64,000 nt of DNA, from the NCBI RefSeq assembly GCF_000143415.4, contig NW_003314423.1, positions 12,011 to 76,010 on the forward strand. The letters run 5' to 3'. Below, one piece after another: positions 7,223 through 54,769 of the stretch (the stretch's first letter is position 1; the number at the start of each line of letters is the position of its first letter). This DNA comes from Selaginella moellendorffii. Lineage: Eukaryota > Plantae > Lycopodiophyta. Below the pieces are notes generated by a model. That model worked only from the letters and a program-made list of their open reading frames with translations. It was not told where the DNA came from and searched no databases. Both the position numbers and the translations under genes were made by a program.

Positions 7223-7260
7223 TAGTGTCCGAGAATCCCTAGATCTGTGAGGATTGGCTT

Positions 7261-8943: not shown

Positions 8944-8992
8944 CACATTCTTGTGACAAGAGCTTTGTGTCTAGACTTTAATCTCTATGGTT

Positions 8993-11152: not shown

Positions 11153-11543
11153 TCTCGGGTCTCCTCCATGACTTTCAATACTTCATCATCCCTAACAGTT
11201 TTACTGGAGTCTAATGAGTCAGTCCCTGAAGTAAAGTGCCAGCTTTTGTGAATGACCGCCACGACTTTCGTCCGTAAAAGAGAAAAGAGAAAAGTGATGG
11301 CTGAGCTATTTTGCTCTTTGCTGTATGTGGAGCATCTCATTGTACAACAAGGACTTTGAAGATTCCAAAGGTGTTTGTCGTGATGCAAGGTCTGACGGTT
11401 GACGGCCTCTAAATATATTAAAAAAGCATCCAAAAAGAGTTGATGAGAAGTCACATTGGCTTAAATAGCGAGTGACACAAACTCCTTGCTCTAGAACTGT
11501 TGTTCTAGTGAAGTTCCAAGGTTTTCATGGCTACTTGTGATCG

Positions 11544-14009: not shown

Positions 14010-14044
14010 ATTCTTTCTTCAAGCAAAGAGCGAATAAAATTTTA

Positions 14045-14116
14045 CGCCGTTGCCGGGGATCGAACCCGGGTCGTCCGCGTGACAGGCGGAAATACTCACC
14101 AGTATACTACAACGAC
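14045..14116 (-). tRNA. trnD-GUC: tRNA-Asp (GTC)
   Basis: Minus strand reads GTCGTTGTAGTATACTGGTGAGTATTTCCGCCTGTCACGCGGACGACCCGGGTTCGATCCCCGGCAACGGCG (72 nt): plant cytosolic tRNA-Asp, followed by a TTTT Pol III terminator. Confidence 0.95.
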
Positions 14117-24492: not shown

Positions 24493-25640
24493 TGTAGCGA
24501 ACGTGGTTTTAACCCTTTATCCTATGGTGATTTACCATAGGATAACACCACGAAGCGGAACCTAAACCCTCTTTGTGCCACGTGACAGATGCCACGTGTC
24601 ACATGCCACGTGTCCATGCCACGTGTCCATAGGAACCCGAAGTTCAGGGCCTTGGGCCACTGAACGAAGGAACGGTGCCAAACTCCCAAGCACGAAGCCA
24701 AGGAGTGACGGAACCGAACCACGGAACAACTCCCGAGCATAAAGCCCAAGGAGCGAAGGGACAGGAGCCCGGAGCGACTTGGAACAGTCCTGGAGCAACT
24801 AGCATCCCAATGCCAGGACCAGCACACAAAACGGAGCCAAACAGAGTCTGGTGCTATTTCGGCATACCGGTGGCCTAACGTGAGGACATGGGTACTCCAC
24901 CAACTAGCATGGAATGGAACTTGGGCTTAGACCCAAGCCGGACGCAGAACAAGGACAGGCACGCAAGCGGGAGCTAGACTATGCCTCAGGTTGGTCGGCC
25001 ATGCCCGATCTACCCACTATCCCTACTATACATTTGGAACCCCCCACAGCCCCCCCCCCCCTGAGGAACACACGCTTTGGGCTTTCACCCTAAGCCTCCC
25101 TTAGTATCAGGAGTTAGTCTCTGGGACAAGCTCGAAACTTACTAAATATGGAATGTCCCTAGATTGCGAATTTGGACATGGGACGAACACCATTGTGTTC
25201 AGGACGATCTCTACATTCCGTAGATATGCCAAATGAGCGAATCTGGACACTTTCCATAAATAGCATTTGGGACCGAAATGAGACTAACACAAAGGGCATG
25301 ATAGCGAGGGTGTTTGGCAGACACGGTAAGCTATCATGTAGCGATATTGAGGGACCAATCTCAATACGCGAGGGTTCTTGTCAAGCCAGTGCAAGACAGA
25401 GCAAAAGAGAACTAACAAGCCGGGCCAAGTATGCTCAGCTCAATAGACACTTAGGAATTCCTTCCTTATGCTCATCCGGCCAAGTACAGATGCAAAGTCC
25501 AGTTTACTAACACTTGAACAAGAGGGGCCGATAAAAGGAACCAGCAATACCGACCTCTTGCCATCGTGGCAGTAAGGTAAGAGTGTCTGTAAGGACTAGT
25601 CGACAGGTAACTTTCGATACCCGAAGTCACATTCGCGACA
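24493..25640 (-). repeat. 3' LTR of element 24493-31780
   Basis: About 99% identical to 30633-31780 (12 transitions counted by eye). Confidence 0.95.
24577..24627. promoter_or_regulatory. Four tandem G-box/ABRE motifs in the LTR (also 30717-30767)
   Basis: gccacgtgac, then gccacgtgtc three times at 13-14 bp spacing. Confidence 0.6.
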
Positions 25641-30632: not shown

Positions 30633-31780
30633 TGTAGCGAACGTGGTTTTAACCCTTTATCCTATGGTGATTTACCATAGGATAACACCACGAAGCGGAA
30701 CCTAAACCCTCTTTGTGCCACGTGACAGATGCCACGTGTCACATGCCACGTGTCCATGCCACGTGTCCATAGGAACCCGAAGTTCAGGGCCTTGGGCCAC
30801 TGAACGAAGGAACGGTGCCAAACTCCCAAGCACGAAGCCAAGGAGTGACGGAACCGAACCACGGAACAACTCCCGAGCATAAAGCCCAAGGAGCGAAGGG
30901 ACAGGAGCCCGAAGCGACTTGGAACAGTCCTGGAGCAACCAGCATCCCAATGCCAGGACCAGCACACAAAACGGAGCCAAACAGAGTCTGGCGCTATTTC
31001 GGCATACCGGTGGCCTAACGTGAGGACATGGGTACTCCACCAACTAACATGGAATGGAACTTGGGCTTAGACCCAAGCCGGACGTAGAACAAGGACAGGC
31101 ACGCAAGCGGGAGCTAGACTATGCCTCAGGTTGGTCGGCCATGCCCGACCTACCCACTATCCCTACTATACATTTGGAACCCCCCACAGCCCCCCCCCCC
31201 TTGAGGAACACACACTTTGGGCTTTCACCCCAAGCCTCCCTTAGTATCAGGAGTTAGTCTCTGGGACAAGCTCGAAACTTACTAAATATGGAATGTCCCT
31301 AGATTGCGAATTTGGACATGGGACGAACACCATTGTGTTCAGGACGATCTCTACATTCCGTAGATATGCCAAATGAGCGAATCTGGACACTTTCCATAAA
31401 TAGCATTTGGGACCGAAATGAGACTAACACAAAGGGCATGATAGCGAGGGTGTTTGGCAGACACGGTAAGCTATCATGTAGCGATATTGAGGGACCAATC
31501 TCAATACGCGAGGGTTCTTGTCAAGCCAGTGCAAGACAGAGCAAAAGAGAACTAACAAGCCGGGCCAAGTATGCTCAGCTCAATAGACACTTAGGAATTC
31601 CTTCCTTATGCTCATCCGGCCAAGTACAGATGCAAAGTCCAGTTTACTAACACTTGAACAAGAGGGGCCGATAAAAGGAACCAGCAATACCGACCTCCTG
31701 CCATCGTGGCAGTAAGGTAAGAGTGTCCGTAAGGACTAGTCAACAGGTAACTTTCGATACCCGAAGTCACATTCGCGACA
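30633..31780 (-). repeat. 5' LTR of element 24493-31780
   Basis: Adjacent to the tRNA-iMet PBS; matches 24493-25640. Confidence 0.95.
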
Positions 31781-33432
31781 TATACATACTTTTGGAACCC
31801 CCTACAGGTCCCCCCCTCCCCATTCGGACTCAAACTTGGACTCATATTCGACTTGGACTTGGTCTTGAAGTCAAATTCGGTCTCGATTTCGGTCTTGGTC
31901 TCATCTTGGGTCCATCTCGAATTCCATCTCAGGCTCCATCTTAGGTCCATCTTGGACTCCATCTCGGATCCATATCAGACTTCATATCGTACTCCATCTC
32001 AGGTCCATCTTGGACTCCATATCAAACTCTATCTCGAATCCATTTTAGACTCGTTTTTGACACTTCCATATGTCACAACACTTGCCATGTATCAATTCTT
32101 CTTGTGTTCCTTTTAGAAACTCATTCACTGATTGCTTCATGCTCATTTCTCGAGCATTTCGTTGGGAGTTCCATTCCCGCCCTTGACTTTTTAAGTCAGA
32201 GCTTTTAGTCAAAACGTGTTATGCTTATTTGGCTTCCACTTCGGCCATTACCAAAGCTCCACTTTGGGGCTTAGGGGTTTGTGTCTCACAACTCCACCAC
32301 CCATGGAAGAAGTTTGATGTCCTCATTAAATAATAAACCATTTTATAAAGTAACACCATCATATATTACCCTTTCTATCCTTGGTATAGTTTGACACTTA
32401 ATGCTTGCCATACCTTACACATCCTTCAAAAAGTATAATCTCTCCAACTAAGAGACTCATTATACCACTTGTGGTGGTTCTCTCTCTTCATTTGGTTTAG
32501 TTCTCACTAAACCCATTAAAGACACCTTTTCTATCTCAATCCAACTATTCCTTCTCGAGTAGTCTCAGTTTCGATCAACATAACTATCACCCTTTTGGAA
32601 CATTTAATTTTGACTTCTCAAAATTAATTTCTTGGGTGTCTCCAACACCTTGTATTACATATGTCGTGTAAACTCCACTTCCCTATCCTAGGAAGTTCTT
32701 TACTTGAGGACATCATCATCCTCTTTTCTATTTTGTGCCACTCTAGACACTAAATTCCACTTATCTATAATTTGTGTTAGAGTTGTCCATAGCCTTATCA
32801 TTTACCTATCTTGCCACTCCCTCTATTGGAGTTTTCGAGTTTGTCAAATTGGAACATTTGGGAATCCATCTTTATAAACATATTTCATTTCCTAGAATCC
32901 GTTAATATCCAATACATAAGTGTTCATTGCTTAACTTTGTTGTTTGGATTTCTTTTAATGAATCCCATAGCCTTTTCTTAGCCACTAGTTTTTTGCTCCT
33001 ATCCTTTGATTGTTGCACTAAACAATATAGAATCATTACTTCCACCTTTCGATTCCACAACAAAGGCTTTGTTTTGCCAAATCTAAAAGGTGTTCAAACC
33101 TAGTAGGACTCTTTAGCATTTTCTGTTGTGGGCTCTATCCATAACCGAACTTCATGACCCACCCACGGGTCGTTCCTTAGGGATTATTTTCTTGAACTCA
33201 TAATACCATTACATTGTTATAGTTCATTTCCCTTAGATATCCTTCCCATTTAGTCATTTTGACTAAGCCACACCATTACCAACAATTCAAATCAACACTT
33301 TGAACTAAGAACTTTATTCTTTAACTTCAAAAGAACTTTGTCTTTATTTAGCCGTAAAATCACCTAGTGATCTAGCCTTAACACTTTAACAAATTTACTA
33401 ATAGGTACTATGTATTGACCTTCAAGTTGTTA
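31781..33432 (-). mobile_element. Older decayed LTR retrotransposon fragment (LTR split by the 24493-31780 insertion, then pol remnants)
   Basis: LTR-like sequence ends in ..ctcaca at 32290, followed by a PPT complement (actccaccaccc) and degenerate pol-like sequence. Contains the same tttggaacccc motif and hexamer-like repeats as other local LTRs. Confidence 0.55.
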
Positions 33433-34181
33433 TGTAAACCACAAATTTTTCCTTTCCAATTTGCCAGCTTATCTTATCTATCCAACTAATACTGCCTTAG
33501 CCTTAATTAAGTTCCCTTGCCAAGGTTCTCACCTATTGTATCAGCTCCTACTTCGTCCTTGATTTCAGCTATTCCCTGCACAAACAACAGAGTGTTTGCT
33601 ATCTATCCACAAATTCCCAAATCTCTCCTAATCCCCCTCTCTGGGTTAGATTAGACTTAAGGTTCAACTACATTCTCCACAAGCAACCAAGCACACCAAG
33701 CCACCAGGTTCCTAACATCCCTTGGTACAACAAAACTTTATCATGGAACCCTAAGCTCTATTTCGTTAAAGTGGGAATTGTCATTATCCCACTTGTAAAA
33801 TAAGGTTTCCAAACCTTTATATAGTATATAAATATAACAAAATTCAACTGCATTGAGGCACATGCCATTTTATTTTAAACAAGGAAATGTCTACTCAATC
33901 ACTTCTCCTCCCCCTGCCACTGCTTCACCTCTCTCTTCTCCTTGTCATCGTCGTCCAATTTCTTTCCATCCTTTTAATATTGGCTCAGTTGCTCCGAGTC
34001 TAGGTGGAGCCCAAGTCCCCATTCAATCTTTACTTTCCCCTTATTAATAAAACAACTTCGTAGACTTCCAATAACATGCTGTAAATGCAAATCCTCTCAA
34101 AGAATTGTCTTTTAATATTAATACAATGGCATGGAACCCCATGCCACAATAAGTTACATTTTTAAATAAATACATGCCATC

Positions 34182-35031
34182 TCAGACTGTTATTTTTTGC
34201 CTCCAATGCCTATACAATAATCTTGGAATTTCATCACTCTCCACACTATCAGGATTTAAACCCAATAGTAATGCCATCTCTTCTCTAATACGTCCACACT
34301 CATGTTCAGTGGTCGAAGAACCCATCCGGTTGAGCAGATTATGGAGATGCGGATAGTGCTTGGCTAGACAATATACATGCCATAAATGATGACTGGTGTC
34401 TGTCCGATCAAATGGCTTCTGATATACTGTTCCATCTACCATTTGGTTGATTTCTGCAGCCACCTCCTGGATTGGCCGGTTCTCTATCACCATCGCTTCA
34501 AGCCGTTTTGCAAGGTCCCCCAGAACATACGGTTTCTTCTCCCTAGTTTCCATACTGCAAGAGATGGGGTGCACTGCATATGTGTGCGTGTTCGCTGCAG
34601 TTTTAATCGGCGAGTCATCGATGATGAGGATTTCACTTGACCTAGCAGTCCGGTTCATCACTACAGCCTCTGGCTTGACGAAGATGGGCTTGCTACCCCT
34701 CACATGGACCATAGTCAAGCAATCCTCCTGCGTTAGGAGAAAGTCAAATGGTAATATTACTCGCGTCTGATCGTGCATCATCTGTAGCAACGTTAATGCA
34801 TTGTGGCGCATCATGGATGTCCAAACTTCCAATTGCAAATTGAACCCGGCCCTCTGTTTTAAGTGTCGCATGGTCATTATTAGATCCCGCAGTTTCTCCC
34901 GTGTGATTAATGTGAATCTGTCTCTTTTGACCAACTTGCGACCGCAGGCTTTGGAGGGTGCAGTGACATTCGAGGACGAGCCACGCTCATGGGAGAAAAG
35001 GACACCGTTCAGATCAAAAACGATACAGTAC
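34182..35031 (-). CDS. FCP1/NIF-like HAD phosphatase domain (last exon of the cargo gene)
   Basis: FDLNGVL motif just upstream of and in frame with the 250-aa ORF; later LEVWTSMM and IIDDSPIK motifs. Confidence 0.7.
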
Positions 35032-38000
35032 TTTCACCGTGACTCTGAAATGAAATGCGTCAGCATAAAAAATGGTACAAGTCAATTTTACCATCTACAA
35101 TATTAGCGAATGGTGCTCCCGATGGTCGTTTAGAGGGTTTTGGTCGAGGAAACGTGAAGGGCGGAAATACTCTCCTCTGCAATGTGGGGTCAATCGCATC
35201 CGATGGCGTGTGGGCACATGCCATTTCAGCTGTAGACTCTGGTACAACTGGCTCAACAGTGGCATGGGGTGGTTCCGATGGCGTGTGATCACACGCCATT
35301 TCAGCTGGTGCCTCCGTTGGCAAAGTGGACATGACCGAACAGGCAGCAGGGGCGGTGTAGGGAGGTTCCAACGGCGCGTAGTCAGACGATTGGGCACACG
35401 TTGGAAATGAGGATACGACCGGCTTGGCGGCTGGGGCGGCCTCATGCGGGTCCAATGGCGCCTGGTCACCGTCAGTTGGATACGTGGACAAGATTGACTC
35501 AGTGGTATGGGCAGCATCAAGTGGAGCGTGGTCAGCTTGCTTGGCGTTGATATGGATAGTAGCCTCCACCAGCTCTGATGACTCTTGCAGGCAAGTAGAG
35601 TCCACTGGCGGATCCATATGCATGTCCAAATATCTCCCTTCGATTGAGATGGTATCCTCCCGTGCTACTAAAAACAAACTCATTAGCACATTGAATCGAC
35701 TATACTGTATTTACCATCAACTGCTATTGAGGAACTAGGACCGATATCACTTGGGCGCACTGCTGATTCTGAAGGATTGGACATACGTTTCGACCCTTGC
35801 TTGGCACTATCCTTCCTCGACACTAAAGGCTAGAGTTTGTATCTTAATTCAACTGAATAATCTCTACTTACCATTTCTTCTGCGACCTACATGGACAATG
35901 TTAGAAATGGTAAAAGGTTAGGAATGGATGTACTATTATTTACCTGATGGTTTGTCTTGTATGACCTTCCTCCGCTGCTCTTTGGCCACCTCAGGCTGGC
36001 CATCGTCGTCATCATCGTCATTGTCGTTATTGTGATCGTCACCATTGTGAGGACCATCCAAGTCCTCTTCGTCCTCCTCTTCTTCATCCTCCTCTTCTTC
36101 GTCCTCCTCTTCTTTGTCCTCCTCTTCGTCCTTCTGCTCTTCCTGCTCATTATCTTTCTCTGGCTCCTCATCCCCCTCCTACATTTCTTCCATAGGCTGC
36201 TCAGGCTGGATGGCTTGTTTTTCCAGGACCATCTTGCGAAAATCATCTGGCCGAGTCTCCATCTCAAAATACAAGACATCCATAGCCTGTTTTAGTGCGT
36301 GACCTAGGACCGTATCCTCACCCGACTATCTTAACATGGTTTCTGCACGTTCTTGCACCCTTCGAAGACGACGAGATGAGAAAAACGTGGCCCTGACTTG
36401 AAAAGCATCCCTCATCCATTGTACCTCTCTATTGAGATTGGGGAAGGGGAGTCCGCCATAGGAATTTGAGTCAGAAGGTGGTGATTGGCTCCTTTCACTC
36501 AGCCCTTGATCTGCAATGAATGGCATGAGCACACACGCCATAACCGCGAGGCATTACCTATCATCTTTTCGTTGCCCTTCTTCCTTTTCGAATCAAACGC
36601 CTCTGATCCCGACGACTATCCAACATGCTTTCGCTTTTTATGACCACTGTCAGTTTGAGCTTGGCTGGTGCTTGCCTGTTTTGCCTTTGAAGAAGTGTCT
36701 CCTGCAAGGAATGGCATGAGACCACACGCTATTGCAAATATAATTTGTACCTCCTTTTTTCCTATTGCTTGTCTGTTTGTCCTTCTTCGACACGCCACCA
36801 GTGCGCTTTTCAGTCCTCGTGTCTGAATATTCACAACGATCTATAATCAAAATGGCGTGAGGCCTCACGTGACCTTACCTTGTGCAGGTTGTGAGCTCGG
36901 CCTAACATCAGTAGCTGTTAACGCCGTTTCAGCATCTGGGGGTGGCCACGCTCCTGCATACAGAGCTTGTGAAATAACATTTAAACTTAAAGTGCGTACT
37001 CACCAGGTTTGTAGAGAAGATACTGTTTTTCTATGGCAACTGTAATTATATGCTCCATTGAAGTCACCTCTTCAATGGAGTTTGTCACCGCAACACACGG
37101 GACACCCTTGAGTAGTGCGGCTCGAAAGAATAGTCCGCCGCAGTTGTACTCGACAACGCATTTGCCCTTGGAGTCACCTGCTATTGCGTTGAAGACCCAG
37201 CTGAGCATTTCCCATGCTGCACCTGGAGCTTTCTTTGGATTCGAAAGCTCCATAGCCGTCTTCAGTTCCTCAGGCACGGGTAAATTGACCTCCCTCAGAT
37301 CAATTCGATCGGCTTTGTTGAACGAAGCTGGGAAGTCACTCCAGTCCCACTCTGCTGCAGGACCAATAACAAGGGCGAGTGTGAAGATGCGGACATTCGT
37401 CGGTATCTTCTTCTTAGCCATTATCCCATGGATCTCCCGCATCTCCTTGCCTTTCAACCGAGCCTTCACCTCGTTCAAGGCCTTCCAGAACTTGTGATAG
37501 GATTCGGAGTCGTAGATCATATAGTGGACTGAAGATTCCACCTCCGCAAGTCCCACCATTAAGTCAATGATGGAGCTGACTTCGTCTGCATGAGTGATCT
37601 CCTCATTTGTGAAGTCCATCACACAAAAGATGTTCTTGACCTGCTCATCTACGCGGGAAACGATGCTCCTCCACCTTTGATCCTCATCCGAATTCACGTA
37701 TACCTGGTAAGGTTCTCGATAGGCCTCTGCTGCGGGGTCGAGCTGTTTCTAAAGCCGGTGGTCGACATCCCTCTTAATGAAATTTGGATACTGATCCAAC
37801 TTCTCAGCTTTACTTTTCATGGCATCCCGCAGCAGATCGATGAACTTGGGGGCCCCCTTCACGTAGTCGTCGATGTCTTCATTTGACAACTCCAGCTCTT
37901 CCATCATCTCTTGCGTGGTGTCGATGCTCACCCTCGCCACGGCCACTTGCTCGAAGATCCAATCCTTCAATAGCGCACGAGCTCTCAGAGTCGTGCACAA

Positions 38001-39787
38001 GTCCTTGTATGTCACAATATGGCCGGGAGTCATTTTGGTCTTGTTGAAGACTACCTCACCACGTAGAAGAGCATTAGCCACTGTCAGAAGGTTGTCGTCG
38101 TCTAGAGACCGCGAGAAACGCAAGGCGTTGAGCTTCAAATCATTGGGCTTCCGACCGTCCTCCACACCCATTGAGTTTAGCAACTCCCCGTCATGGTACC
38201 TCCTCAGCACATCTACCCATTTGTCAAAAACAACTTTTGTCGCGAGTAGAATGTTATGGATGCTGAGTGTGTCATTGACCCCCAGTGTTTTCGAGAGAAG
38301 ACTCGAGAATTCCTGCAATGGAAATGGCGTGAGGCCACATGCTATGCCACATGCAACGAGGCTTACCTGCCAGGCGCTAGTTGCTAGTGCACGTCCTTGT
38401 CCTGGTTTTTGTGGCTTCTTCAGTTGAACCCAGAGCTTCCGTGTTCGTGCCAATGTCTCGTGCAGACCCGATTTGTAGCACGTTTCTTGCTTGACATTCT
38501 GCGCGTGGGAGATGTATATGATAGATCGGAGGGGCGAGTTGCCTTTTATCAGGCGGACAACTCTTGTCTTGAAGACTTTCTTTACCTCCTCGCCCACCAT
38601 AATATCCACAACTATCTGTTGCATCGCCAAGCTAGAATGCTGCCCGGAGACGGCATAGAACCGGATGTTCTGATCGTCCAACACCTTCCTATTGATCAAG
38701 TCTGGAAACCTCGTCTCGCCCTTCATTGTTCGGTAGTAGGGGATCACGTCTGCGATGTCGGGTGTTACTGGACTTGCCAGCATCTTCTGCTTCTGTTTCT
38801 CCACCCACTCATCAGATACTAGCCTGTGGTTGTATTTGCTTTGGATCTCGATACGGCTCACGTCGATTGTATATACTTTGTTGGAATAGTAACAAGTACT
38901 ATTATCTGCGACGATTTTTGCTGCCTCTTCTTGCTCTTTCTGCTCTTTGCGGCTCTTCTTTTTGGTGGGTGTAGTGTTCGAACCCGAGGCAATGGCATCA
39001 CCGAGTAGCTTCTTTTTTGGAGCAGCAGAGTCGGACGTCGGCTTGAGCTTGACCACCCTTTTCTGCTTCGGGGTAGTTTCCAGATCGACCCCCTTCCCCT
39101 TCGCTTCGCAAACTGGAGGCACTCTCAACGGCTCAATGTTGGAATATAGTTTTTGAACATCGCCGTAGGTGAGGTCCGTGGATTCCATGTGATCTTCATA
39201 GACCCGCAGCGTCTTTGAAATTGTGGGCCTCCTGGACAACCTCTCCCTAGCTCCCTCTAGGAATTCCTCATAGCCGCTGCCCCCCTCCGGGAAGCCGCTA
39301 GGATGTGCAAGGTGGATCTTGAAGGCGGACGCTGTCTCTACCACAAGTGCCAGTCCATATTCTTGCATGGAACTACATGGAGTGTCTGTCACTTGGATGA
39401 GGATCCCCATGCATTCTTTTCTCCCACCATCTGTGTTGTACAGCATCAGATCCTCGCCTTCCATCCCGAAAGTCCAACTGGTGAGCTCCTCCCCCTTCTC
39501 TGCATCCACATTGACAGTAGCTGGAAGAAGAACGCAATTCCTCGCCTGTTCAGAAATGCACAACAATTAGAGCTGACAGATGAAAAGCTAGCAGCTGGAA
39601 ATAACGTGAGGCCACACGCCATTCACCACTGCATCAGATGTCTTGAGGTTGCATCCTAAGATGGCGTGAGGCTACACACCATCTGTAACCGGACTGCACT
39701 CGAGAGCCCAATCGGTGCATGCCAATGTTGCTACTGAATGGCATGTGGCCTCATGCCATTTTCTACTTGGCCTAAAAGACTTACCAT
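34182..39787 (-). pseudogene. Multi-exon TE cargo gene: ParB/Srx-like + degenerate DNA amino-MTase-like + acidic linker + FCP1/NIF-like HAD phosphatase; at least 4 in-frame nonsense codons
   Basis: Predicted ATG 39787-39785, intron 39784-39546, then the 605-aa and 236-aa ORFs, which are in one frame separated by a single TAG (37749-37751). Motifs: IDVSRIEI..FYAVSGQHS; KCVVEYNCGGLFFRAALLKGVPCVAV; D/E tract at 36000-36180; YCIVFDLNGVL..VWTS..ILIIDDSPIK. Confidence 0.65.
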
Positions 39788-42737
39788 TTGAAGCCGAATG
39801 GAGGCCGTGACAATCGAGGCCGGACTCGCTGGCGAATGTGCACTGTGTGTGCAGCGGATCGTAGCAGCAAGGCTACTCTACCACTTACAGTTGGAGAGTG
39901 GTGCTGAAATCTCCCGGGACGCCAAGTGGGCTGCGTGTGGGTGGCGGAGTGGGCGGCGGAGTTGGCGGCGAAGTTACAAACTGGGTGTGTCTTGAAGTGG
40001 ACGCCGATGCACACGAGCGCGATGCGAGCGCGAGTGTGATGCAAGCGCGAGTGGATGCCGATGCACACGAGAAACCTGTAGAGAAGTGAGCGTGATCGCG
40101 AGTGGGAGCGCGATGCGAGCGGGAGCGCGATGCGAGCGGGAGCGCGAGTGTGATACGAGCGCGAGCGCGAGTACAAAGCAAAATGCAAAACCTAACCTCA
40201 CACGCGCGAAATGTCACAACGGTTGGTAATCCTGCCACGTCATCATTCCTCGGACTTGGGCGCCACCATTAATTTCTGGATTGCCGCGCGCATGCAAGCA
40301 CGCAAAATCCAAAAGAAATCCGCAACGTCATCATTCCTCGGACTGCATGCACGCGAAATCCAAAAGAAAGATCATGATTGGGATATCATTTAATACCCTC
40401 GCTATATTTATACCATGCATGATTGGATATTCCAAAGCATCTTGTATTTCCAAAAATGGCAGATGTTCAGCTAAATAAAGAAATTCTATCTGTTTCTATT
40501 TTTCTCTCAAATCAATATTATAGCGTGTGGGCTCATGCAATTTTGAACCAAAGAAACCCAAAAAACGTTAGACCCAAAATATTTTGAAAAAACCCAAAAA
40601 ACCCTAAACATTTTAAACCCAAAAATCCAGGTGTCCTGTGGCGTTATTCCTTGAATGGCGTGTGGGCGCATGCCATTTTCAGGGCCAAATGCTGAATGGA
40701 GAAAAATTCCCTTTCAGTGCAAATGCTGCAAGAGGCAGATGCCGAGCACAAAGGACTGTAACTACCTCACATGACACAGATAAACTTTTCTCTATTTGGC
40801 AAAGATAAACTTTATAGCGTGTGGGCTCATGCAATTTTGAACCCAAAAAATGCACCAAAAAATTCTCGGCGTCATCTGGCGTTATCTCTTGAATGGCGTG
40901 GGGCCGCATGCCATTTTCAGGGGCACATAGGAGTATATTCCTAGGATATTCTGACACGCGCGAGATTTTTTTGAGTTTTCTGGAGATCCAACCGTTAGAT
41001 CGCAACTAGATTTTACAGAATGGTATACAATGTCTTTCTTGATGACCCTGCAAAGAAGCATCTCGATCGGACACCACATAAGACCACACGAGCCTTACAA
41101 TATTTCAGGGGCATTTGCCATAGATCCGACCGTTATTTTGCTCCAAGATTTTACAGTTTGGTGTGCATTGACCTTTCCATCGACACTGCAAAGGGACATC
41201 ACAATCAGATGCGGGATCACAAGAAACTAACTTCACTAACTCTGGTTTCACCAAGATCTACGTAAGGAGTTATGAAATGAAAGGACCCTCTCTATTGAAA
41301 TGTGTTTATGGTTCTAGGGGCATTGTGACATATCAAAGGATTTTGCATCAAGTTCTGTATTTACATGTTTATCAAGCTACTGAATTGCTAAACCCTAAAC
41401 CCTAAACATGTGGCAAATGCTGTGTGAAGAAAGATGCCCTTTCTGGGCAAATGCTGTAAGAGGCAGATGCCGAGCAGATGTATCTCAGGCTAGCGAAGGG
41501 GACAAACGAAAGCTAGCTATAAACATGACGGGATGCAAATAGATTACTAGGCTGGTCCTACGAAAATCAAAAACCATAATTGAAAACATTGAAAATGCAA
41601 AAAGAAAGGTTTATAATATTTTTGAATTTTAAGCAACCAAAGGAATGTAAGTAGGGCATGTGTTTGTAAGTTTAAAAATGCCTCAACCACTTAAATTCCC
41701 AAGTAAATAAAGCTGTTTCTATTTTTGGTACAGGTAAACTTTATAGCGTGTGGGCTCATGCAATTTTGAACCCAAAAATGCACAAAAAAATGCTCGACTA
41801 GCATTATTCTTTGAATGGCGTGTGGCCTTATGTCGAGCATTATTCTTTGAATGGCGTGTGGCCTTATATTGCCATAAATGGACGTACACACACAGCATAA
41901 TTATTCCTTTACACGGCAAATAATCTTGGTGCGGATCGCTGACATGGCATGGCAAAGTTCGAATCACTGACATGGCACAGCTGGATCGAGGCAAGGACAT
42001 GATGTGACAAAGTTCAACCTCCGACAGCAAAGTCTAGAAGCTACTCAGTTTGAAATTTGTCAAAGGAATCATAAGATCTGGTTTGTCAGAGGATTTGATG
42101 TGACGTTCAAGCGTGTGTTATTTTTGAATTCTCGAACTCATTCCTAGGTCTATCATTTTTGTGCGCCGTGTTCTTGGTTCTGCTGAGCGCAGTGAGCGCT
42201 GCTTGTGTAAGCGGCGTTGTGGGCTGTGGTTTATGCGTCTACGAGCGGTTGCGGCATTGCGAGCGCCATTGCGAGCGGCAGTTTATGTGAGTGGCAGTTT
42301 GTGCGAGCGGCGCTACGAGCAGTTGCGGTGTTGCGAGCGACGCTACGAGTAGTTGCGGTGTTGCGAGCGGCACTGTCTTTGGTGTGGCTACCGCTTCCTC
42401 TTGATATTCGGCACTTGTGCTTCCTGGTATGTTCACCATGGAATGGCTTAGGACCACATTTAGAAATGGCATGAGGCCACATGCCATCTTGGGCCCTTGC
42501 AATTTCATGGCTAGCGTATTGTCATGTATGTTTTTACTTGCCTGCAGTTGTGTGTATATCAAGATGGCATGAGGGCTCATGCCAATTTTGTGAATGCGAA
42601 ATTTCACGTGGGTGTCAATAGCATGTTTGAATAATGGCATGTGGCCTCATGCTATTGAGGTTGTTTGGTATGTTATGATTTAGGCCATTCTCCAATCATT
42701 TTTTGTATGGTCTTAACTTCTTTTCTGCACTTTCAGA

Positions 42738-45700
42738 ATGGCCTTCAGGGTTGGGGAAAAGGTTTACATTTTGAATGGTGGGAAGAGAGTTGCAAAAGGG
42801 ACCCTTGTGTCTATGGATCGGAACTTTGTTATACACTGTCAAAGGCTTAGGGAAGGCAATGCTGCTGTATCAGTAGAGACTGTCTTCGATGGGAATGTGG
42901 TCGCTATTGAACGAGGAGAGATGGTCGTCGGGGTAAATGTTGTTGTTGCCTTGAAAAATCTTCAGAAGAAAGCAGATGTTGGGGACAGCGCAAGTGCGAT
43001 GCATGTTCCCTCCGTGGATCTTAAGAACCGTGCTACATGGATTCAGGCAAAGGTGTTTCTAAACAACCCCGAGGGGGAGGTGGTAGCTGAGGGCTTAGCC
43101 ACAGTTGTCGATCCAAGAGATGCGGTTGCTAATCAAGAATTGGGCTGGGATGATATTGGAGTTGCGATTTTAGAGGTTGTTGACACAGAAGAAAACAGTC
43201 TGACTATTGGAAGCATTGTGCGGTGGAAATTGAGGCACTTAGTGTTTGAGAATGTGAAGGATTCACAATCAAACACCATTACAACTGATGACAGAACATC
43301 TCTTCATGGGAAAAGAAAGTACACCTTCCTAAAGCGCAGCCAAAGGGATCTGAGCAACGAACCGAAAAGGCAGAAAATGGCGATGGAGGTTCGAATGGTC
43401 TCGACAGTTGCTTGTTGCAAGAGGAGGTGCTGTCAACATGCTGATTGGGATGCTATTGAAGAGGAGAGAGCAAGATACAAGACATTGTCCTGGAAGGCAG
43501 CTCGCAATTTTGTGTATGAGGCATTACGGTCATCTGTTGATGCTTCAGAACATCAGGTGGGGGGCATGGTCTTCCAGAAGGGTTTGGTCTGCATGAAGGC
43601 ATGGAGAATCATTTATGGAGTCCCTCGAACCACATTCTACAGAATCAAAACTGAGTTCGAGGAACAAAGGGTTCAACAGGCAGTCCATGGGAACGACGGT
43701 ACGCACAAAACCAGGGGTCATGTTGTATATGGAGAGGCAATCTTCAAGAGGTTTGTCGAGACATGTAGCGAGCAGCAACCACATAAAACCCGCCTCTTGG
43801 AAGATGGAACACGAGACACCCAACGAGTTCTCCCTTCCATGTATACCAAGGGGGCCATATTGGAAGATGTGAATCGGGAACTCCAGAGTAATGGCTACAG
43901 GAAGCTGAGCCAATCTAGATTTAGTAGATTGTGGAGCAACAGGTTCAGGGATGTGAGTATAGGAAAGTACTCCAGCTTTTCAAAGTGTGACGAGTGCACT
44001 GCTATCAAAATGGCTTTGTCGAAGAATTTTTGCAGCGCTCAAGAGCGAGAGATGTTGGTTAGAAGGCGGCTCGACCACAACATCGAGCAGAGAAGCTGCA
44101 GGACTGCATATTATCATAACAGGATTCTCTCCATGGAGAGACCTGACTCTTACCTCTGCATCATCCACGACAAAATGGACCAGAAAAAGACATGCTTACC
44201 TCGACTCAATCCTGCCCCCAAGGCAATCTCTTCATCCATGCAGCTGCCTGTGTCTCTGTTTGGCATAATCGCTCATGGGCATGGTGCCCAGAACTATGGG
44301 AACTTCTTTGTACCTCTATGGGGTGGCGGGGGTGCAAACATGATGATTGCGTCCCTAGCAAAACACTTAAGGTCTCTGCAAAGTGCGCAGACTGAGCTGA
44401 ACGGCCAACCCTTGCATAAGGCCCTTGTCGATCAAACCCCATACAGGGTTCAGCTGGAGGAGGAGCAAAGGCTTGCAGTATCGCGTGGGGCCCCATGCCA
44501 TCCCAGTGAATATGTTGGCCGTCAGATTGTAGGGTTATCACGTGAGGCCTCATGCCATTCCGACGAGGCTGGTCGCCCGGTGAATGCACAGCCTCATCCA
44601 AACGAAGCAGAATCTCAAGGAAGTTCTTGCGGCCGATGTGGCCTTCCACCCCATCTTCTGCTCCAAACAGACAATGCTGGCAGTGAGAACAAAAACATGT
44701 ACGTCTTCGCGTACTTGGCGATGCTTGTTGCCAAAGGCATATTTGAAACGGTTACACTTGGCTTTCTCATGGTTGGGCACACTCATGAAGACGTCGATGC
44801 CATGTTCAGTCACCTAGCAGAGTCCCTCTGGCGATCCAATGTCCTCACCCTCCCACAACTCTACGATGAATTCCAAAATTGCATCAAAGGCACTGTTGAA
44901 GCTGCACTTCTGACAGAGGTTCCAGACTTTAAGGGGTTTGTAAGAGGCTACATCAGGGACGGATCCGAAATGCTGATTAGCCACTCCAAGCCTCTTCAGT
45001 TTCATTTCAGCATGTGTGACGATGCTCCAGTGATGAGGTACAAGATGAGAGAATGGGACACAGTGTGGCTGCCAGTGGACGGCATTGAACTCTTCAAGAG
45101 AGATCCCATAACTGGGGAACCTATGATTCCTCAGGGTTCCCCACGGCCGATGCACCCGGATGGACTCAAAGACCAGGAAAGTATAGTGGCCGGGATTAGA
45201 CAGCATATTGCCTTCTGGAAGAGGGGGTTGGTGTTTGGTGGAGAATCCTATTTTCAGAGGTGCAAACCTTTGCTCGAATACTGGGAGAAGATTATATCTG
45301 CTATCCAAAATGGGCCGGTTGTATATGAAGAATTGGAAGAGTCCTTTTGGCCAGAACCCAGAGCACCAGATAGTAGCGGAACAATGTCCTCTGGAAATGC
45401 AGTGACAGATAACGATGTTGAGGATCACTATTGTGGGCCGAGGAACAAGAAGCCGGATTCAGCATTCAATCCAGTACAGGTCTGCAAAGGAATGGTCGTG
45501 CTTGTCAGACCCAGTAATAAAAAACAAATGATATGGGTGGGGCGCTGCATCACTGATGCAGAGGAGGACGCAGAAACTAACTCCTTCAATATAACTGTGG
45601 AGTGGTTCAAGCCAAGTTCCGGATATACGAACGATTGCCTAGAAAAGAGATGGGTGCTGAATCCAAGGGATCCCAGCATGAGCATATCGGTGGATAATGT

Positions 45701-45879
45701 TGTGCATGGTTGGATGCGGAAGCAGAGTGCCACCATCACCTTGCCAGACCATGCAAGAGATGCAGCAAGAGCATTCATAACCCGGGTTCAAGGTGAGATT
45801 CATGAATATTCCTTTACTAAGTTTCTAATGTATTTTATTTCAAGGTGAACAATCCGAATCTGAATCAGAGGAGGCGTGA
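42738..45879 (+). CDS. DD(D/E) transposase, Sola-like (DUF7869-type), about 1030 aa; small terminal exon 45845-45879
   Basis: Open 1036-codon ORF with CCKRRCC, FSKCDEC..H, IIHDKMDQKKT, LLLQTDNAGSENKN, FLMVGHTHEDVDAMFS. Predicted intron 45793-45844 gives ..TRVQGEQSESESEEA*; 5'-UTR intron 42427-42736. Confidence 0.88.
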
Positions 45880-47669
45880 TGGCATGTGGCCTTACGCCAT
45901 TCCTAAGTGAGATGATACAAATAACAAATAACAAGATCTTTCTCTAAAATGTTATTTAGCATGTGGCTTCATGCCATTGCTCTCCACAATCATGCATTGA
46001 ATTTCTATCCTTGCATAATACTTCTCCATATATATAGCATGTGCGCACATGTGATAGGGTTCATTAGGCCTGATATAGTGTGTGAGGTAAAACAAAGATG
46101 ATGTGACATATGCATTTACCAATCACACGTGCATAAATCTAATAATATGGCGTGTGGCCCATATTAATGGCACATAAACCCATATTGTGGGCTTACGTGC
46201 TTTATGTACCATCATTCCCTTGCAGCGTGTGTGTTGGTTTCCTTTTATAACACAACGAACTCCATATTTTAGGGTGAAGAGCGTTCTCATGGCAAGCACA
46301 AAATCTGTAAGTGAGGCAGAAAAGGAGACGGAGAAGGAGATAGGTGAAGATGTAGAATATATAAGTCTTCCAAACTCCCTGTACTATACTCCAGGTGATC
46401 ATTTTTCTGAACAAACGGCAACATTAACAACTATCGAGAACGCCCCAGTAACGTCAGAGACAACAATCCAAAGCAAAACAACTGACCCGGAGAAGGATGA
46501 TAGTACCGCTGAGAGTACCAAAAAGGAGGTGTCCACTAGCGCTTAGGCTTATAATGGCGTGTGCCCTCATGCCATTTACTTGATCACCAAATACCTTTTT
46601 CCCTTTGCACTAGTATATCTTAATACCGGTCTGAGAAATAGAATGGCATGTGCCCTCAGGCCTTTTACTAAATCACCTTTGAAAGAAATGCAAGCCTCTA
46701 TGTCGTAAAAAAAAGGTACTAGAGAAATTCCTTAATAATATGAATGTTATTTAGTTTCATGAAAATACACTAAGGGTCAAATGAGTTAAATGACTTCTCC
46801 AGACTAGCAATGCCTCTTGCTACACCTTCACAATTAGATTCGTTAGAAAAAGATAACATTGAATAATATCTAAATGTTCTCACCATTAAGTTATATGTCT
46901 GGCTAATAGGAATGACGTTCATCTTGGAAAGCTCACCACACGCTCAATGAACAAACAAATAGTGTGTGCGCGCATGCCATCGCTCTTCTTTAGCTTCAGA
47001 TTCGGCTTGTTCACCTTGACAATGAGATTTATTATACAACCAGATGGACTCAGTCTGGACATAAAGTCACCGCGCTAGTCACCATGCCCCAGATATGTCT
47101 AGCCCCTGGACAAAAAACGTATAATTTCACGTCATTTTCAAATACTTGAAAATTTGTACCTAGTCCCATTTTACTGAATAAATCCCACTTTAACGAAATA
47201 GAGCATCCCTTTAAATCCTAAACCTTGGGCGTAACATTTACTTCGGGACATCAGGGGTAAACATCATGGCCTAATGGCTTGGTATGGGTACCCCTACTCC
47301 CCCACTTCCATCCCAAAGGGAAAACTTAAGCCCTTAGAAAGGGTGAGGACCAATGAGCCGCAAAGTACTCAAGTGGGGCACCACTCCACATGAGCCGAAA
47401 GCACCGCAATCAATTTCCTTTCTGGGAGTGGGAGCTACTCTTGAACACTTCCTTGGGTGGCCCCTCCAGCACCACCTGAGTCCATGCTCATTCCCCTCAG
47501 CTATAGTCTCAACCTCAAGTTAGTTTGGAAGCATCATTAAAGAGTTCCTTCAAAACTAATTCCTAGACCTCACTATATACTTTTGGAACCCCCTACAGCT
47601 GTGCCCCCCCCCCCCCTTAGGAGACACACGCTTTGGGCTTTCACCCCACGACCTATATTAGTATTTAGA

Positions 47670-47935
47670 CTCAATCTCGCACTCGATCTTGGATTTGATT
47701 TCGGACTTGACCTTGGACTCTACCTCGAACTCGGTCTTGGACTCGATCTGGGACTCGATCTTGGACCGACCTTGGACTGTCTCGTACTTGATCTCGGATT
47801 GGATCTCGGACCCCATCTCAGATCTCAGACTCGGTCTCAAACTCAGTTTCGGAGTCGGTTTTGAACTCAATCTTGGACTCAGTCTCGAACTTGGTCTTAG
47901 AGTCGGTCTCGAACTCGATCTTAGACGCAGTCTCA
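47670..47935. repeat. Degenerate hexamer-like tandem array within LTRs (also 31830-32050, 55260-55335, 60415-60565)
   Basis: Repeating ggactc/gatctt/ggtctc/gaactc units. Confidence 0.7.
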
Positions 47936-49974: not shown

Positions 49975-50954
49975 TGTAAGCAACCAAAGGGAACGACTCG
50001 AGATATGATCCATTGGGGTTCAAATATAGAGGGAAAGGGCCCATGAACAAGAGCACCCCCTTTTCCAATCGGTTAAGGGTCTTGGGATATTTGGGGTTAA
50101 GTGTCCTTGGGTTTGAATAGTACTAGGTTGGGTGACCTCTCAGGAAGTCCAAAACTCAGGAGCTTACATTTGGTATCAGAGGGGTCTCGAGTCCGACTCT
50201 GTTGGTTGGCTAAGGGAATCACACCACATGTTGATTGACATCTGGCTAGTCCAGTTTGCTCCCACTGGGCTCAACTCGAGAGGTAGGGTGTCAAGAGAGC
50301 TGCGGCTCTCAGCTTCCGTTCACGAGGGCGTGAACTTGCAGGGAAGCATGGTGGATTGTAAGCAACCAAAAGGAGGGCGTGAACTTGCAGGGAAGCATGG
50401 TGGATTGTAAGCAACCAAAGGGAACAACTCGAGAGACGATCCATGGGGTTCAAATATAAAAGGAAAGGGCCTATAAACAAGAGTGCACCCTCTTTTCCAA
50501 TCGGTTAAAGGTCTTGGGATATTTAGGGTTAAGTGTTCTTGGGTTTGAATAGTACTGGGTTGGGTGACCTCCCGGGAAGTCCAAAACTCAGGAGCTTACA
50601 TTTAGTATCAGAGGGGTCTCGGGTCCGACTCTGTTGGTTGGCTAAGGGAATCACACCACATGGTGATTGACATCTGGTTGAGGGGTAGGGTGTCAAGAGA
50701 GCTGCGGCTCTCAGCTTCCGTTCACGAGGGCGTGAACTTGTAGGGAAGCGTGGTGGATTGTAAGCAACCAAAAGGAATGATTCGAGAGACGATCCGTTGG
50801 GGTTTAAATATAAAGGGAAAGGGCCCATGAACAAGAGTGCACCCCCTTTTCCAATCGGTTAAGGGTCTTGGGATATTTGGGGTTAAGCGTCCTTGGGTTT
50901 GAATAATACTGGGCTGGGTGACCTCTCGGGAAGTCCAAAACTCAGGAGCTTACA
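49975..50954 (+). mobile_element. Cassandra TRIM tandem array (LTR-int-LTR-int-LTR) with 5S rRNA-derived LTR segment
   Basis: ~195-bp TG..CA LTRs at 49975-50168, 50406-50600, 50759-50954; PBS tggtatcagag after the first LTR; purine-rich PPT; TSD TTGTG on both sides. Each LTR has GTTAAG(C/T)GT..TTGGG..TAGTACT.GG.TGGGTGACCTC..GGAAGTCC, the 5S internal control region. Confidence 0.92.
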
Positions 50955-52848: not shown

Positions 52849-53626
52849 TGTAAGCAACCAAAGGGAATGATTTAAGAGACGATCCATGGGGTTCAAATAT
52901 AGAGGGAAAGGGCCTATGAACAAGAGTGCACCCTCTTTTCCAATCAGTTAAGGGTCTTGGGATATTTAGGGTTAAGTGTTCTTGAGTTTGAATAGTACTG
53001 GGCTGGGTGACCTCCCGGGAAGTCCAAATTTAGGTATCATAGGGGTCTCGAGACTGACTTTGTTAGTTGGCTAAGGGAATCACACCACATATTGATTGAC
53101 ATCTGGCTAGTCCAGTTTGCTCCCGCTGGGTTCGACTTGAGGGGTAGGGTGTCAAGAGAGCAGGGCTGCTGTAGCTCTTAGCTTCCGTTCACGAGGGTGT
53201 GAACTTGTAGAGAAGCATGGTGGATTGTAAGCAACCAAAGGGAACAACTTGAGAGACGATCCATGGGGTTCAAATATAAAAGGAAAGGGCTTATAAACAA
53301 GAGTGCACCCCCTTTTTTAATCGGTTAAGAGTCTTGGGATATTTGGGGTTAAGCATCCTTGGGTTTGAATAGTACTGTCCCGGGTGACCTTCCGTTCACG
53401 AGGGTGTGAACTTGCAGAGAAGCATGGTGGATTGTAAGCAACCAAAGGGAATGACTCGATAGACGATCCATGGGGTTCAAATATAAAGGGAAAGGGCTCA
53501 TAAACAAGAGTGCACCCCCTTTTCCAATCGATTAAAAGTTTTGGGATATTTTGGGTTAAGCATCCTTGGGTTTGAATAGTACTGTCCCGGGTGACCTCCC
53601 GGGAAGTCTAAGTTTAAGAGCTTACA
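52849..53626 (+). mobile_element. Second Cassandra TRIM tandem array (3 LTRs, internally deleted)
   Basis: LTR starts tgtaagcaaccaaaggg at 52849, 53226 and 53433; same 5S-like box; flanks CATAA/CGTAG differ only by two G/A transitions (decayed TSD). Confidence 0.88.
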
Positions 53627-54769
53627 CGTAGGTTGTACGAATCCTCACCTCCATCATTTCTTAAGTGGCCACCGGTCCTTTGTTAGCCTCTGTTGTTCTC
53701 TACTAAGACTTAACATTATCTGCCAAGTATGGTTTTGCATATGGGACCTTCTTTAAGCTCAGTAACTACAACGCTCAGAAGTAATTTTCCATATCATAAA
53801 ACCAATCCTCCACCACCTTATAGTCATTCATTCCCTTGAAGACCGATGGGGGCTTTATTTTGTACTTGGGAATTGCCTGAGGGACTGATTCCACTTTAAT
53901 TTATTCGACCTTGTTCGGTTCCACCTCAGTCCCTACCAAAGGGTCCACACCTTCTGCATTGCTAACATCTGTAGTCTTTCACTTTTTCTTCCGCTTTTTA
54001 TTTTGTATACAAGAGTCTCCAATAGGGCATTGGTCTGAGCCAATTGTCCTTCTAGAACATCCAATTGAGCCTTGGATGACCGAACCTCACCACTGGACTC
54101 CTGTTTGGAAGTTTCCTCACTGGAGTCCTCCTTATGTAAGGATTCCTCATCCATAGCCTCTTGTTTGACTAGAAGCTCCAGCTCTAAAAGAGGTTCTATC
54201 TCCGCCTTACAAACTACCTTTGTCATCTCTTAGCAATCCGCCTTTATCCTTCGCTAAAACTGAGGAAAAAGTTTTGATACCAAATTGTAAGCCATAAATT
54301 TTTCCTCTATAATTTACTAGCTTACCCCGTCTATCCGACCAATATTGCTTTAGCCTTAATTAAGTTCCTTTGTTAAGGTTCCCACCTATTGTACTAGCTC
54401 CTACTTCGTACTACTTGGTTTCAACTACTCCCTACACAAACAATGGAGCATTAGCCATCCATCCACGGATTCTCAAATCTTTCCCAATCCCCTTCCCTAG
54501 GTTAGATTAGATTTAAGGTTCAATTACACTCTCCGCAAACACAAGCAACCAAGCACACCAAACCACCAAGTTCTTAACATCCTTTGGTACAACAAGACTT
54601 AATCATGGAACCCTTTAAATCCCAAGCTTTAGGTGCAACACTTGCTTCCGGACACTAGGGGGAAATACCATGGCCTAATGGCCCAATATAGGTACCCCTA
54701 CTCCCCCACTTCCATCCCAAAGGTAAGGCCCAAACCTCTAGGAAGGGCAAATATCAATGAGCCGCCATA

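Follow-up and report, generated by a model that had tools for sequence, protein, structure and literature searches.

A Sola-Type Transposon of Selaginella moellendorffii With a ParB-Class Accessory Gene and Dispersed Palindromic Sites

Introduction

In the brown alga Ectocarpus, Sola1-1_Ec32 represents a 21.5-kb Sola1 family in which a gene combining ParB and DNA methyltransferase (MTase) domains lies on the strand opposite the transposase, and the accessory protein has been proposed to bind its own element and alter it epigenetically (PMC12477816, Genome Biol 2025). Here, we describe a comparable element from a land plant, the transposon at positions 33753-47206 of a 64,000-nucleotide stretch of the Selaginella moellendorffii genome (assembly GCF_000143415.4, contig NW_003314423.1, positions 12,011-76,010 of the forward strand; hereafter, the window), which carries a transposase gene, a divergent accessory gene of the ParB class, and numerous copies of a long palindrome. 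Compared by description only, the two elements are both large Sola-type transposons with an opposite-strand gene in which a ParB-like domain is accompanied by a further enzymatic domain. Unlike Sola1-1_Ec32, the window element resides in a land plant, measures 13.5 kb rather than 21.5 kb, and has an accessory gene that is interrupted, contains a NIF-type domain, and offers no demonstrable methyltransferase.

In the red alga Bostrychia, Plavaka elements (EnSpm/CACTA-like) encode PAG3, which consists of an N-terminal ParB-like domain and a 2-oxoglutarate (2OG) oxygenase (10.1101/2025.02.11.637652; Curr Biol 2025). Tandem inverted-repeat arrays beside PAG3 have been proposed as its binding sites, with the idea that the protein "binds and marks its own DNA" (10.1101/2025.02.11.637652). 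The window element resembles this system in the fusion of a ParB-like domain to an enzyme domain and in the presence of inverted-repeat sites in the element, but its transposase belongs to another superfamily, and the 2OG oxygenase is the partner domain of Plavaka. Furthermore, the Plavaka arrays adjoin the ParB gene, whereas the sites of the window element are dispersed, and the arrays of its relatives precede the transposase on contigs with no detectable ParB-like open reading frame (ORF).

Second proteins that recognize short repeated motifs of their own element are known from plant transposons, namely TnpA of En/Spm, with its subterminal 12-bp motifs, and VANC of VANDAL, and they play roles in transposition and in undoing methylation-based silencing. 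Their folds are unrelated to the one considered here and their motifs are short rather than long perfect palindromes, whereas the window element is known from sequence alone. In bacterial ParB-parS systems, the site is a palindrome of ~16-24 bp present in several copies. The window element shares with them a multi-copy palindromic site and a predicted ParB/Srx fold, but differs in having SGQHS in place of GERRxR, no Pfam ParBc match, no shown helix-turn-helix (HTH), and no ParA partner, and in that the palindromes of its relatives are untied to a ParB-like gene. Basidiomycete KDZ transposons reportedly carry TET/JBP genes (Iyer et al. 2014, cited in PMC12477816); these too are eukaryotic DNA transposons whose passenger modifies DNA or chromatin and has been suggested to influence the epigenetic state of the element itself, although both transposase and passenger are different, and we know of no repeated palindromic sites described for them. 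Sola2 elements with Fanzor genes are also known.

The first-pass annotation of this locus had regarded the combination as undescribed, a view that does not hold, as the Ectocarpus Sola1 gene with ParB and MTase domains and the arrays of Plavaka PAG3 had already been published. In our literature search, the combination of a ParB fold, a C-terminal-domain (CTD)-phosphatase-like domain, and dispersed sites was found nowhere described. Overall, the element is of a kind already known from algae, and differs in its land-plant host, its phosphatase-like domain, the undemonstrable methyltransferase, and its dispersed sites.

Palindromic Sites of the Window Element

The palindrome ATGGCRTG-N6-CAYGCCAT has 24 matches at <=2 mismatches in the 64-kb window, where 0.08 are expected, and its 24-mer version has 27 matches at <=6/24 mismatches; the total comes to 27-29 copies, about 28. 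All of them lie within 33846-46981, and there are zero matches in the other 50 kb (Table 1). Adjacent palindromes are frequently 57-98 bp apart. The sites carry 1.4-2.0 bits of information at most core positions and 0.4-0.9 bits at four degenerate positions, and the information just outside the 24-mer drops to between ~0.1 bit and ~0, despite the origin of many sites by local duplication.

The half-site CpG (ATGGCGTG) is found as CA 32 times, as CG 22 times, and as TG only 2 times (binomial p=7e-8). Neutral decay of methylated CpG is expected to yield CA and TG equally; because the decay observed here is one-sided, one base is free to be R, whereas its neighbor is held. Such one-sided tolerance is a putative signature of base-specific reading. 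In addition, site 38323 lies inside a 48-nt (16-codon) in-frame insertion of the accessory gene (38299-38346), as BLASTP against the Selaginella homologue P0040 leaves a 16-residue gap exactly over LVACGIACGLTPFPLQ. This suggests that palindromes can be gained by insertion, besides tandem duplication.

A metagenome scan for the palindrome returned three isolated single sites with no related genes, which are ascribed to chance. Sites for host YY1-like or RY-like factors were also dropped as candidates, as the conserved unit is the full 24-bp palindrome and its sequence is wholly different between lineages. Separately, GC-rich short tandem repeats (GAGCGCGATGCGAGCG... and TGCGAGCGGC...) are located between the two genes at 40015-40182 and 42269-42381, adjoining each start, and may be promoter-associated elements.

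Palindrome Arrays in Transposase Relatives

The DNA of four transposase relatives (L001, L002, L011, and L012) was compared with the window, with upstream coverage of 8-10 kb for L001 and L002 and of only ~1.5 kb for L011 and L012. All four carry a palindrome array of their own directly 5' of the transposase ORF, for a chance expectation of <=0.04 each. The transposases of L001 and L002 are 85% identical and their palindrome is the same, whereas lineages with ~30-36% identity have different palindromes; the window motif and that of L012 have only the ATGGC/GCCAT core in common. No ParB-like ORF was detectable on any of the four contigs by tblastn and by a domain profile run on six-frame ORFs. 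Because the arrays occur with no detectable ParB-like ORF, and because their sequence follows the transposase, they are a transposase-lineage trait for which a nearby ParB-type gene is not required. Terminal inverted repeats (TIRs) and element boundaries of these relatives were not located.

Within the L001 array (L001:8213-9513), the asymmetric 3-nt center alternates between ACC and GGT in neighbors ~57 bp apart, so that successive sites alternate in orientation within a ~115-bp unit.

Boundaries, Target Site, and Mobility

The TIR core GCTCTATTTCGTTAAAGTGGGA (22 nt) has exactly two occurrences in the window, at 33755-33776 (+) and 47183-47204 (-), for a chance expectation of none; the complete TIR comprises 24 bp, of which 22 bp are exact. 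The element is flanked by a host repeat, an uninterrupted paralogue of which is found at 54286-54765 (~80% identity). When the flanks are aligned to this paralogue, the left one ends at 54614 and the right one begins at 54611, which gives a 4-bp overlap. The junction of the window copy with the paralogue reads ...GGAACCCT|TTAAATCC..., with CCCT present on either side of the insertion, and in the three-way alignment the paralogue reads ...ATCATGGAACCCT|TTAAATCC..., with one CCCT only.

A second copy of the family, L003, is found on a contig of a public short-read assembly, where it ends ...AATAGAGCTT and is followed by unrelated DNA. Because this copy ends ...GAGCTT, the full termini are 5'-AAGCTC...GAGCTT-3' (a 24-bp TIR), and the mismatch at 47205 belongs to the window copy. 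L003 is 97.7-99.5% identical to the window copy and shares its right terminus next to another flank, but is without 42747-42988 and 44871-47072 (window coordinates); it is an internally deleted derivative sitting at another locus. As a near-identical deleted copy sits at a different locus, the family has moved recently. The retained sequence (L003:1-3577) includes four palindromes at orthologous positions, one of them with two base changes, but its transposase has lost 84 codons at the start together with the catalytic half. Overall, the window element is a cut-and-paste DNA transposon of the DUF7869 (Sola-type) family that is autonomous and was active recently; it inserted into another repeat and generated a 4-bp duplication.

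The Transposase and Its Assignment to Sola

The transposase is encoded by a single ORF that matches Pfam DUF7869 with 142 bits against a gathering cut-off of 26 (E=2e-41). Among 5.8 billion clusters, 12 homologues were retrieved, one with 97% identity (the L003 copy) and the others with 27-36%; no record matched the 764-aa or the 1036-aa transposase sequence exactly. In a 10-sequence alignment, the window transposase retains all invariant columns, which comprise CC..C.Q, C..C...K, IIHDKMDxxKT (D478, D481), LQxDN..NKN (D645), and VGHTHEDxDAxF (H681, H683, E684, D685, D687). Because it is uninterrupted and keeps every invariant column, the transposase looks functional. The first-pass annotation had proposed a transposon with TIRs, a target-site duplication (TSD), and an empty site, an intact DD(D/E) transposase of ~1030 aa, and some 30 palindromes confined to the element, and in these three points it is borne out.

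Alignments to homologues stop at ~aa 550 and resume at ~601-636, and the length of the intervening linker is strongly variable across the family. One HTH-like stretch, HGISKxTFYRYK, is visible in the transposase, with an insignificant match to Pfam HTH_psq (E=0.15).

With respect to family assignment, the 4-bp TSD of Sola elements is found here, as CCCT is doubled at the insertion and single in the paralogous empty site. The AT-rich AWWT target preference is a hallmark of Sola1 (PMC3845634, citing Bao et al. 2009). This preference is not seen here, as the verified TSD is CCCT and the right flank of L003 starts AAAG, although one or two insertions make this a weak comparison. The window TIR and the published TIR of an insect Sola1 miniature inverted-repeat transposable element (GGACCGTTTATTTTGAAAGTGG...) both have AAAGTGG from base 16, with 15/32 bases matching ungapped, a weak resemblance. 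Published Sola2 sequences show the same order, CxxC...D...D...H-x-x-x-D, in a by-eye comparison only.

The Accessory Gene

The accessory gene is plausibly a multi-exon gene that starts at an ATG near 39787, a model suggested by splice-site-like strings: ATG|GTAAGT at ~39787-39779, the acceptor AACAG| at ~39547, and the donor G|GTGAGT at ~37004. Its homologue P0040 aligns on either side of the TAG at 37749-37751; this stop therefore lies inside coding sequence, and the accessory gene of the window copy is broken. Two more stops in the same frame, at 36326-36328 and 36179-36181, may also disrupt it. P0040 (L007:10001-11425, Selaginella moellendorffii GL377575.1) is an annotated 451-aa gene with homology to the helical and motif-I-like regions of the accessory protein, and its neighbors are ordinary host genes (ArfGap, VQ, SCAR). 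No ParB core, transposase, or palindrome is present at its locus, and P0040 is either a domesticated or a decayed relative of the accessory protein. Searches with the NIF block and with a profile of the full-length alignment found no relatives, which gives no hint that a host gene was captured recently.

When the 605-aa block was run exhaustively against 1.84 billion representatives, 17 matches came back, none stronger than E=1e-11. About 12 of these are genuine relatives, short and weak, that have PxxADxxP ... F.A(I/V)SGQHS ... R.RIL ... N ... AR.Q in common, whereas P0036 (an RTX-repeat protein), P0039, and P0043 were rejected as repeat or low-complexity artefacts. The contigs of the relatives mostly measure 1.6-2.2 kb and hold no neighbors, with the exception of Selaginella P0040. 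The AlphaFold (AF2) model of the ParB domain has a predicted local distance difference test (pLDDT) score of 74, and the best 50 Foldseek matches are all of the ParB/Srx type (Noc, ParB, PadC, KorB, sulfiredoxin, SbnI, and a serine kinase), led by 7ol9_B (E=1e-4, probability 1.0), with modest template modeling (TM) scores of 0.35-0.39. A ParB/Srx fold is thus supported at the level of the predicted model. At the level of sequence profiles there is no Pfam ParBc match, and a PDB profile search gave nothing relevant; PDB sequence searches with the three main accessory blocks, the ParB-domain profile, and the motif-I region likewise yielded nothing meaningful. The position of the GERRxR motif, which supplies the arginines that bind cytidine triphosphate (CTP) in ParB, reads SGQHS here and (I/V)(S/D)GQH(S/T) in all relatives, and among the canonical features of a CTP-dependent ParB clamp neither an HTH nor a C-terminal domain was identified in the accessory protein.

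Of the hallmarks of N6/N4 DNA methyltransferases, which include a (D/N/S)PP(Y/F) catalytic motif and an FxGxG S-adenosylmethionine motif, only the string VVEYNCGG was found, which resembles motif I and has the counterpart IVEYGCGG in Selaginella P0040; in the 253-aa block that contains it, no DPPY motif, no Pfam match, and no PDB match were found, and the predicted model of this block (pLDDT 42) is unusable. The last block scores 25.1 bits for Pfam NIF, above the gathering cut-off of 21.8 (E=1.6e-5), over profile positions 1-126 of 160, and its motif I reads FDLNGV (Asp-x-Asn) and its motif IV LIIDDSP. The catalytic DxDx(T/V) is replaced by D-L-N-G-V, and because Asn takes the place of the second catalytic Asp, phosphatase activity of this domain appears doubtful. 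Overall, the gene belongs with the ParB-domain accessory genes known from algal Sola1 and Plavaka elements; its parts are a predicted ParB/Srx fold, a helical region, low-complexity linkers, a NIF-type domain, and a methyltransferase-like remnant that is unconfirmed.

The first-pass annotation had described this gene as a divergent, multi-exon cargo gene of ~5.6 kb of the ParB-MTase-phosphatase type. The minus-strand blocks at ~39787-34185, the ParB/Srx fold (by Foldseek), and the NIF domain (by Pfam) agree with that description; the exon structure is unconfirmed, and the MTase is reduced to a motif-I-like string in a block modeled with low confidence.

Table 1. Features of the window element and palindrome arrays of its relatives (window positions unless a contig is named).
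Feature	Position	Strand	Remarks
Whole transposon	33753..47206	.	13,454 bp; bounded by TIRs and CCCT duplication
Left TSD copy, CCCT	33749..33752	.	Junction alignment against uninterrupted paralogue
Left TIR, AAGCTCTATTTCGTTAAAGTGGGA	33753..33776	+	22-nt core plus outer AA; outer AA backed by copy L003 ending GAGCTT
Right TIR	47183..47206	-	Single mismatch, at penultimate base 47205
Right TSD copy, CCCT	47207..47210	.	Junction alignment against uninterrupted paralogue
Paralogous empty site	54570..54660	.	Further host-repeat copy without insertion
Transposase gene	42738..45848	+	One 1036-aa ORF without stop; DUF7869 family
Hypervariable linker within transposase ORF	44388..44643	+	aa ~551-635; palindromes at 44479, 44536
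Accessory gene	34185..39787	-	Divergent from transposase; coding blocks in three frames, ~5.6 kb; putative exon model
605-aa block	39566-37752	-	Open block
Predicted ParB/Srx-fold domain	38370..38972	-	aa ~199-399 of 605-aa block; motif FYAVSGQHS
In-frame TAG	37749..37751	-	One unambiguous stop; splits 605-aa from 253-aa block
253-aa block	37748-36990	-	Frame as 605-aa block; only TAG between the two
Methyltransferase-motif-I-like string VVEYNCGG...	36990..37748 (253-aa block)	-	Domain unconfirmed
Acidic run (EDEEE...)	36178-35939	-	Possible middle exon; putative part of gene
Pro/Ala-rich repeated block	35710-35063	-	Possible middle exon; 15-nt tandem repeat; putative part of gene
283-aa block	35033-34185	-	NIF-type domain
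NIF/FCP1-type HAD phosphatase-like domain	34185..35033	-	Pfam NIF
Left-end sites, degenerate	33846..34148	.	33846 (5 mismatches), 34125 (4 mismatches)
Accessory-gene sites	35202..38346	.	6: 35202, 35277, 36519, 36710, 36851, 38323
Inter-start-codon region	39600..42656	.	13 palindromes, densest cluster; GC-rich tandem repeats
Inter-start-codon sites	39600, 39660, 39737, 40519, 40654, 40813, 40892, 41742, 41814, 41850, 42465, 42563, 42633		
Transposase-linker sites	44479, 44536		2 palindromes
Right subterminal cluster (right 1.3 kb)	45878..46981	.	6 sites: 45878, 45955, 46033, 46553, 46642, 46958
L001 array, TATCGTCG-N3-CGACGATA	L001:8213-9513		17 copies; ORF start 10001
L002 array, TATCGTCG-N3-CGACGATA	L002:7848-8460		9 copies; start ~9151 (homology start)
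L012 array, CCTATGGCC-N4-GGCCATAGG	L012:16-1497		12 copies; ORF start 1661
L011 array, GCTCRAAC-N4-GTTYGAGC	L011:259-1065		6 copies; ORF start 1476

Which Protein Reads the Palindromes?

We favor a reading in which a mobile Sola-type element carries a ParB-class gene as a possible add-on, the palindromes are a trait of the transposase family, and their binder is most likely the transposase. The palindromes would then be candidate high-information sites for a dimeric element-encoded protein, and the transposase itself could use them to recognize the element, to assemble the transpososome, or to autoregulate the bidirectional promoter region. It is favored as the binder because arrays exist where no ParB gene is seen. 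An intact ParB-type protein may load at the same palindromes in addition, marking or protecting the chromatin of the element. All parts taken jointly, we give this reading an even chance of being correct, and several observations weigh against it. The TIR bears no resemblance to the palindrome, and the right end of L003 amounts to only 132 bp with no palindrome in it. The arrays of the relatives are found on the 5' side of the ORF only, whereas simple end-recognition sites would be expected at both ends. HGISKxTFYRYK is near-identical in lineages with differing palindromes and is therefore not the determinant of specificity. A ParB gene located in another copy could act in trans, and with ~1.5 kb of upstream DNA for L011 and L012 the absence of the cargo is not proven genome-wide. 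Finally, the Sola label itself is provisional, being based on the 4-bp TSD, the weak TIR resemblance, and the Ectocarpus precedent rather than on direct comparison with reference Sola transposases.

Instead of the transposase, the ParB-type accessory protein might be the binder, sitting as a dimer on the palindromes as ParB does on parS, while its methyltransferase-like and phosphatase-like domains would mark or de-silence copies of its own family. ParB proteins are indeed known to bind palindromic parS sites as dimers, and the modeled ParB/Srx fold would suit this role; the same idea has been put forward for Sola1-1 of Ectocarpus and, with inverted-repeat arrays adjoining the ParB-type gene, for PAG3 of Plavaka, and the window sites, of which 27+ are spread over 13 kb and into gene bodies, are scattered much more widely than those of the transposase-only relatives. 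However, four relatives carry lineage-specific arrays with no ParB-like ORF detectable on the same contigs, and the window gene is broken, yet its sites are well preserved. Moreover, with SGQHS at the GERRxR position, no Pfam ParBc match, and no demonstrated HTH DNA-binding domain, the protein departs from known ParB binders, its MTase lacks confirmation, and its phosphatase motif has the form Asp-x-Asn. We regard this possibility as rather unlikely. The same findings bear on the module of cargo protein and cognate sites that the first-pass annotation had proposed: as far as the data on the four relatives reach, other family members lack the cargo, an absence that the annotation itself had named as counting against the module, and the idea is weakened by their arrays. 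The ParB/Srx fold and the constrained, element-specific sites are supported as such.

A host protein could also be responsible, in that the palindromes might be promoter or enhancer modules for a host factor, driving or insulating two divergent genes and multiplied by tandem duplication. The densest clusters do occupy the interval between the start codons and the DNA immediately 5' of the transposase ORF, likewise in all four relatives, with a unit spacing of ~57-120 bp that is typical of tandem duplication, but a palindrome of 22-24 bp holds far more information than the usual sites of host factors, its sequence is completely different between lineages, and further sites occur in subterminal regions and within coding sequence, which makes this explanation improbable. 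By our estimate, the least probable explanation, and a very improbable one, is that the palindromes work by folding into hairpins or cruciforms, whether as DNA or as transcripts, or else are tiny self-propagating insertions that have no protein partner. The copy in the 48-nt in-frame insertion of the accessory gene relative to the Selaginella homologue, the two copies in the hypervariable transposase linker, and the perfectly complementary arms of the consensus are as such an explanation would have it. However, the ratio of CA 32 to TG 2 is more readily explained by base-specific protein contacts than by pairing, many sites have a CG arm opposite a CA arm, so that the base pair is broken, and the flanks of the sites have no insertion signature in common, with ~0 information beyond the 24-mer.

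Returning to palindromes read by a protein of the element, a bolder extension can be formulated, namely a self-recognition code in which a long palindrome evolves together with a dimeric binder encoded by the element, and its copies multiply there, even through in-frame insertion into the element's own genes. In the land-plant lineage, a ParB-fold protein bearing a phosphatase-like effector domain would have been linked to this code, loading on the sites and altering the chromatin or transcription of its own copies. This proposal is speculative, and we hold it to be a little more doubtful than binding by the ParB-type protein.

Surroundings of the Element in the Window

A gene-dense, GC-rich stretch at 6533-14116 includes a RING-H2 ORF (6533-7222), three long intronless pentatricopeptide repeat (PPR) ORFs at 7261-8946 (-), 8993-11152 (-), and 11544-14009 (+), of which the third has an E motif; a tRNA follows at 14045-14116 (-). 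This gene content identifies the host genome as the nuclear genome of a land plant. Closer to the element, the region at 26-34 kb shows extreme GC and AT skew. Two tandem arrays 6.1 kb apart, at 24576-24627 and 30716-30767, have an equal period, copy number, and consensus unit (TGCCACGTGTCACA x3.8), and fragments of the element's flanking host repeat are likewise found twice, at 25027-25107 and 31167-31247. Together, these look like a pair of long direct repeats, possibly long terminal repeats. Within the flanking host repeat, directly to the right of the insertion, a degenerate 12/24/48-nt tandem array (GACTCGATCTCG...) occupies 47640-47935, and a related 23/35-nt tandem array is found at 31897-32052.

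Further to the right, the tandem duplications at 50324-50423 (49-nt x2) and 53182-53601 (207-nt x2) both hold the string GTGAACTTGCAG(G/A)GAAGCATGGTGGATTGTAAGCAACCAAA, which indicates another repeat family close to the empty-site paralogue. In addition, 72-nt tandem units at 62456-62623 encode a plant-type leucine-rich repeat (LRR; ...IPKEFG.LKDLQVLSLSYNLL); 57512-58514 is listed with these LRR units, and a PPR fragment spans 57536-58348.

Concluding Remarks

To our knowledge, ParB-type accessory proteins of eukaryotic transposons have been the subject of recent reports from algae only, and a binding site or function has been shown for none of them. The window element brings this accessory class into the land plants, with an added phosphatase-like module, and supplies a precisely defined candidate site of 22-24 bp that is present in ~28 copies and under visible selective constraint. 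The family-wide, lineage-specific arrays are the most interesting result, and they sharpen the question to whether the transposase or the ParB-type protein is the reader. If it is true that an element-encoded protein reads a lineage-specific code, this would account for the way in which related families sharing a genome avoid cross-mobilization or target their own regulation.

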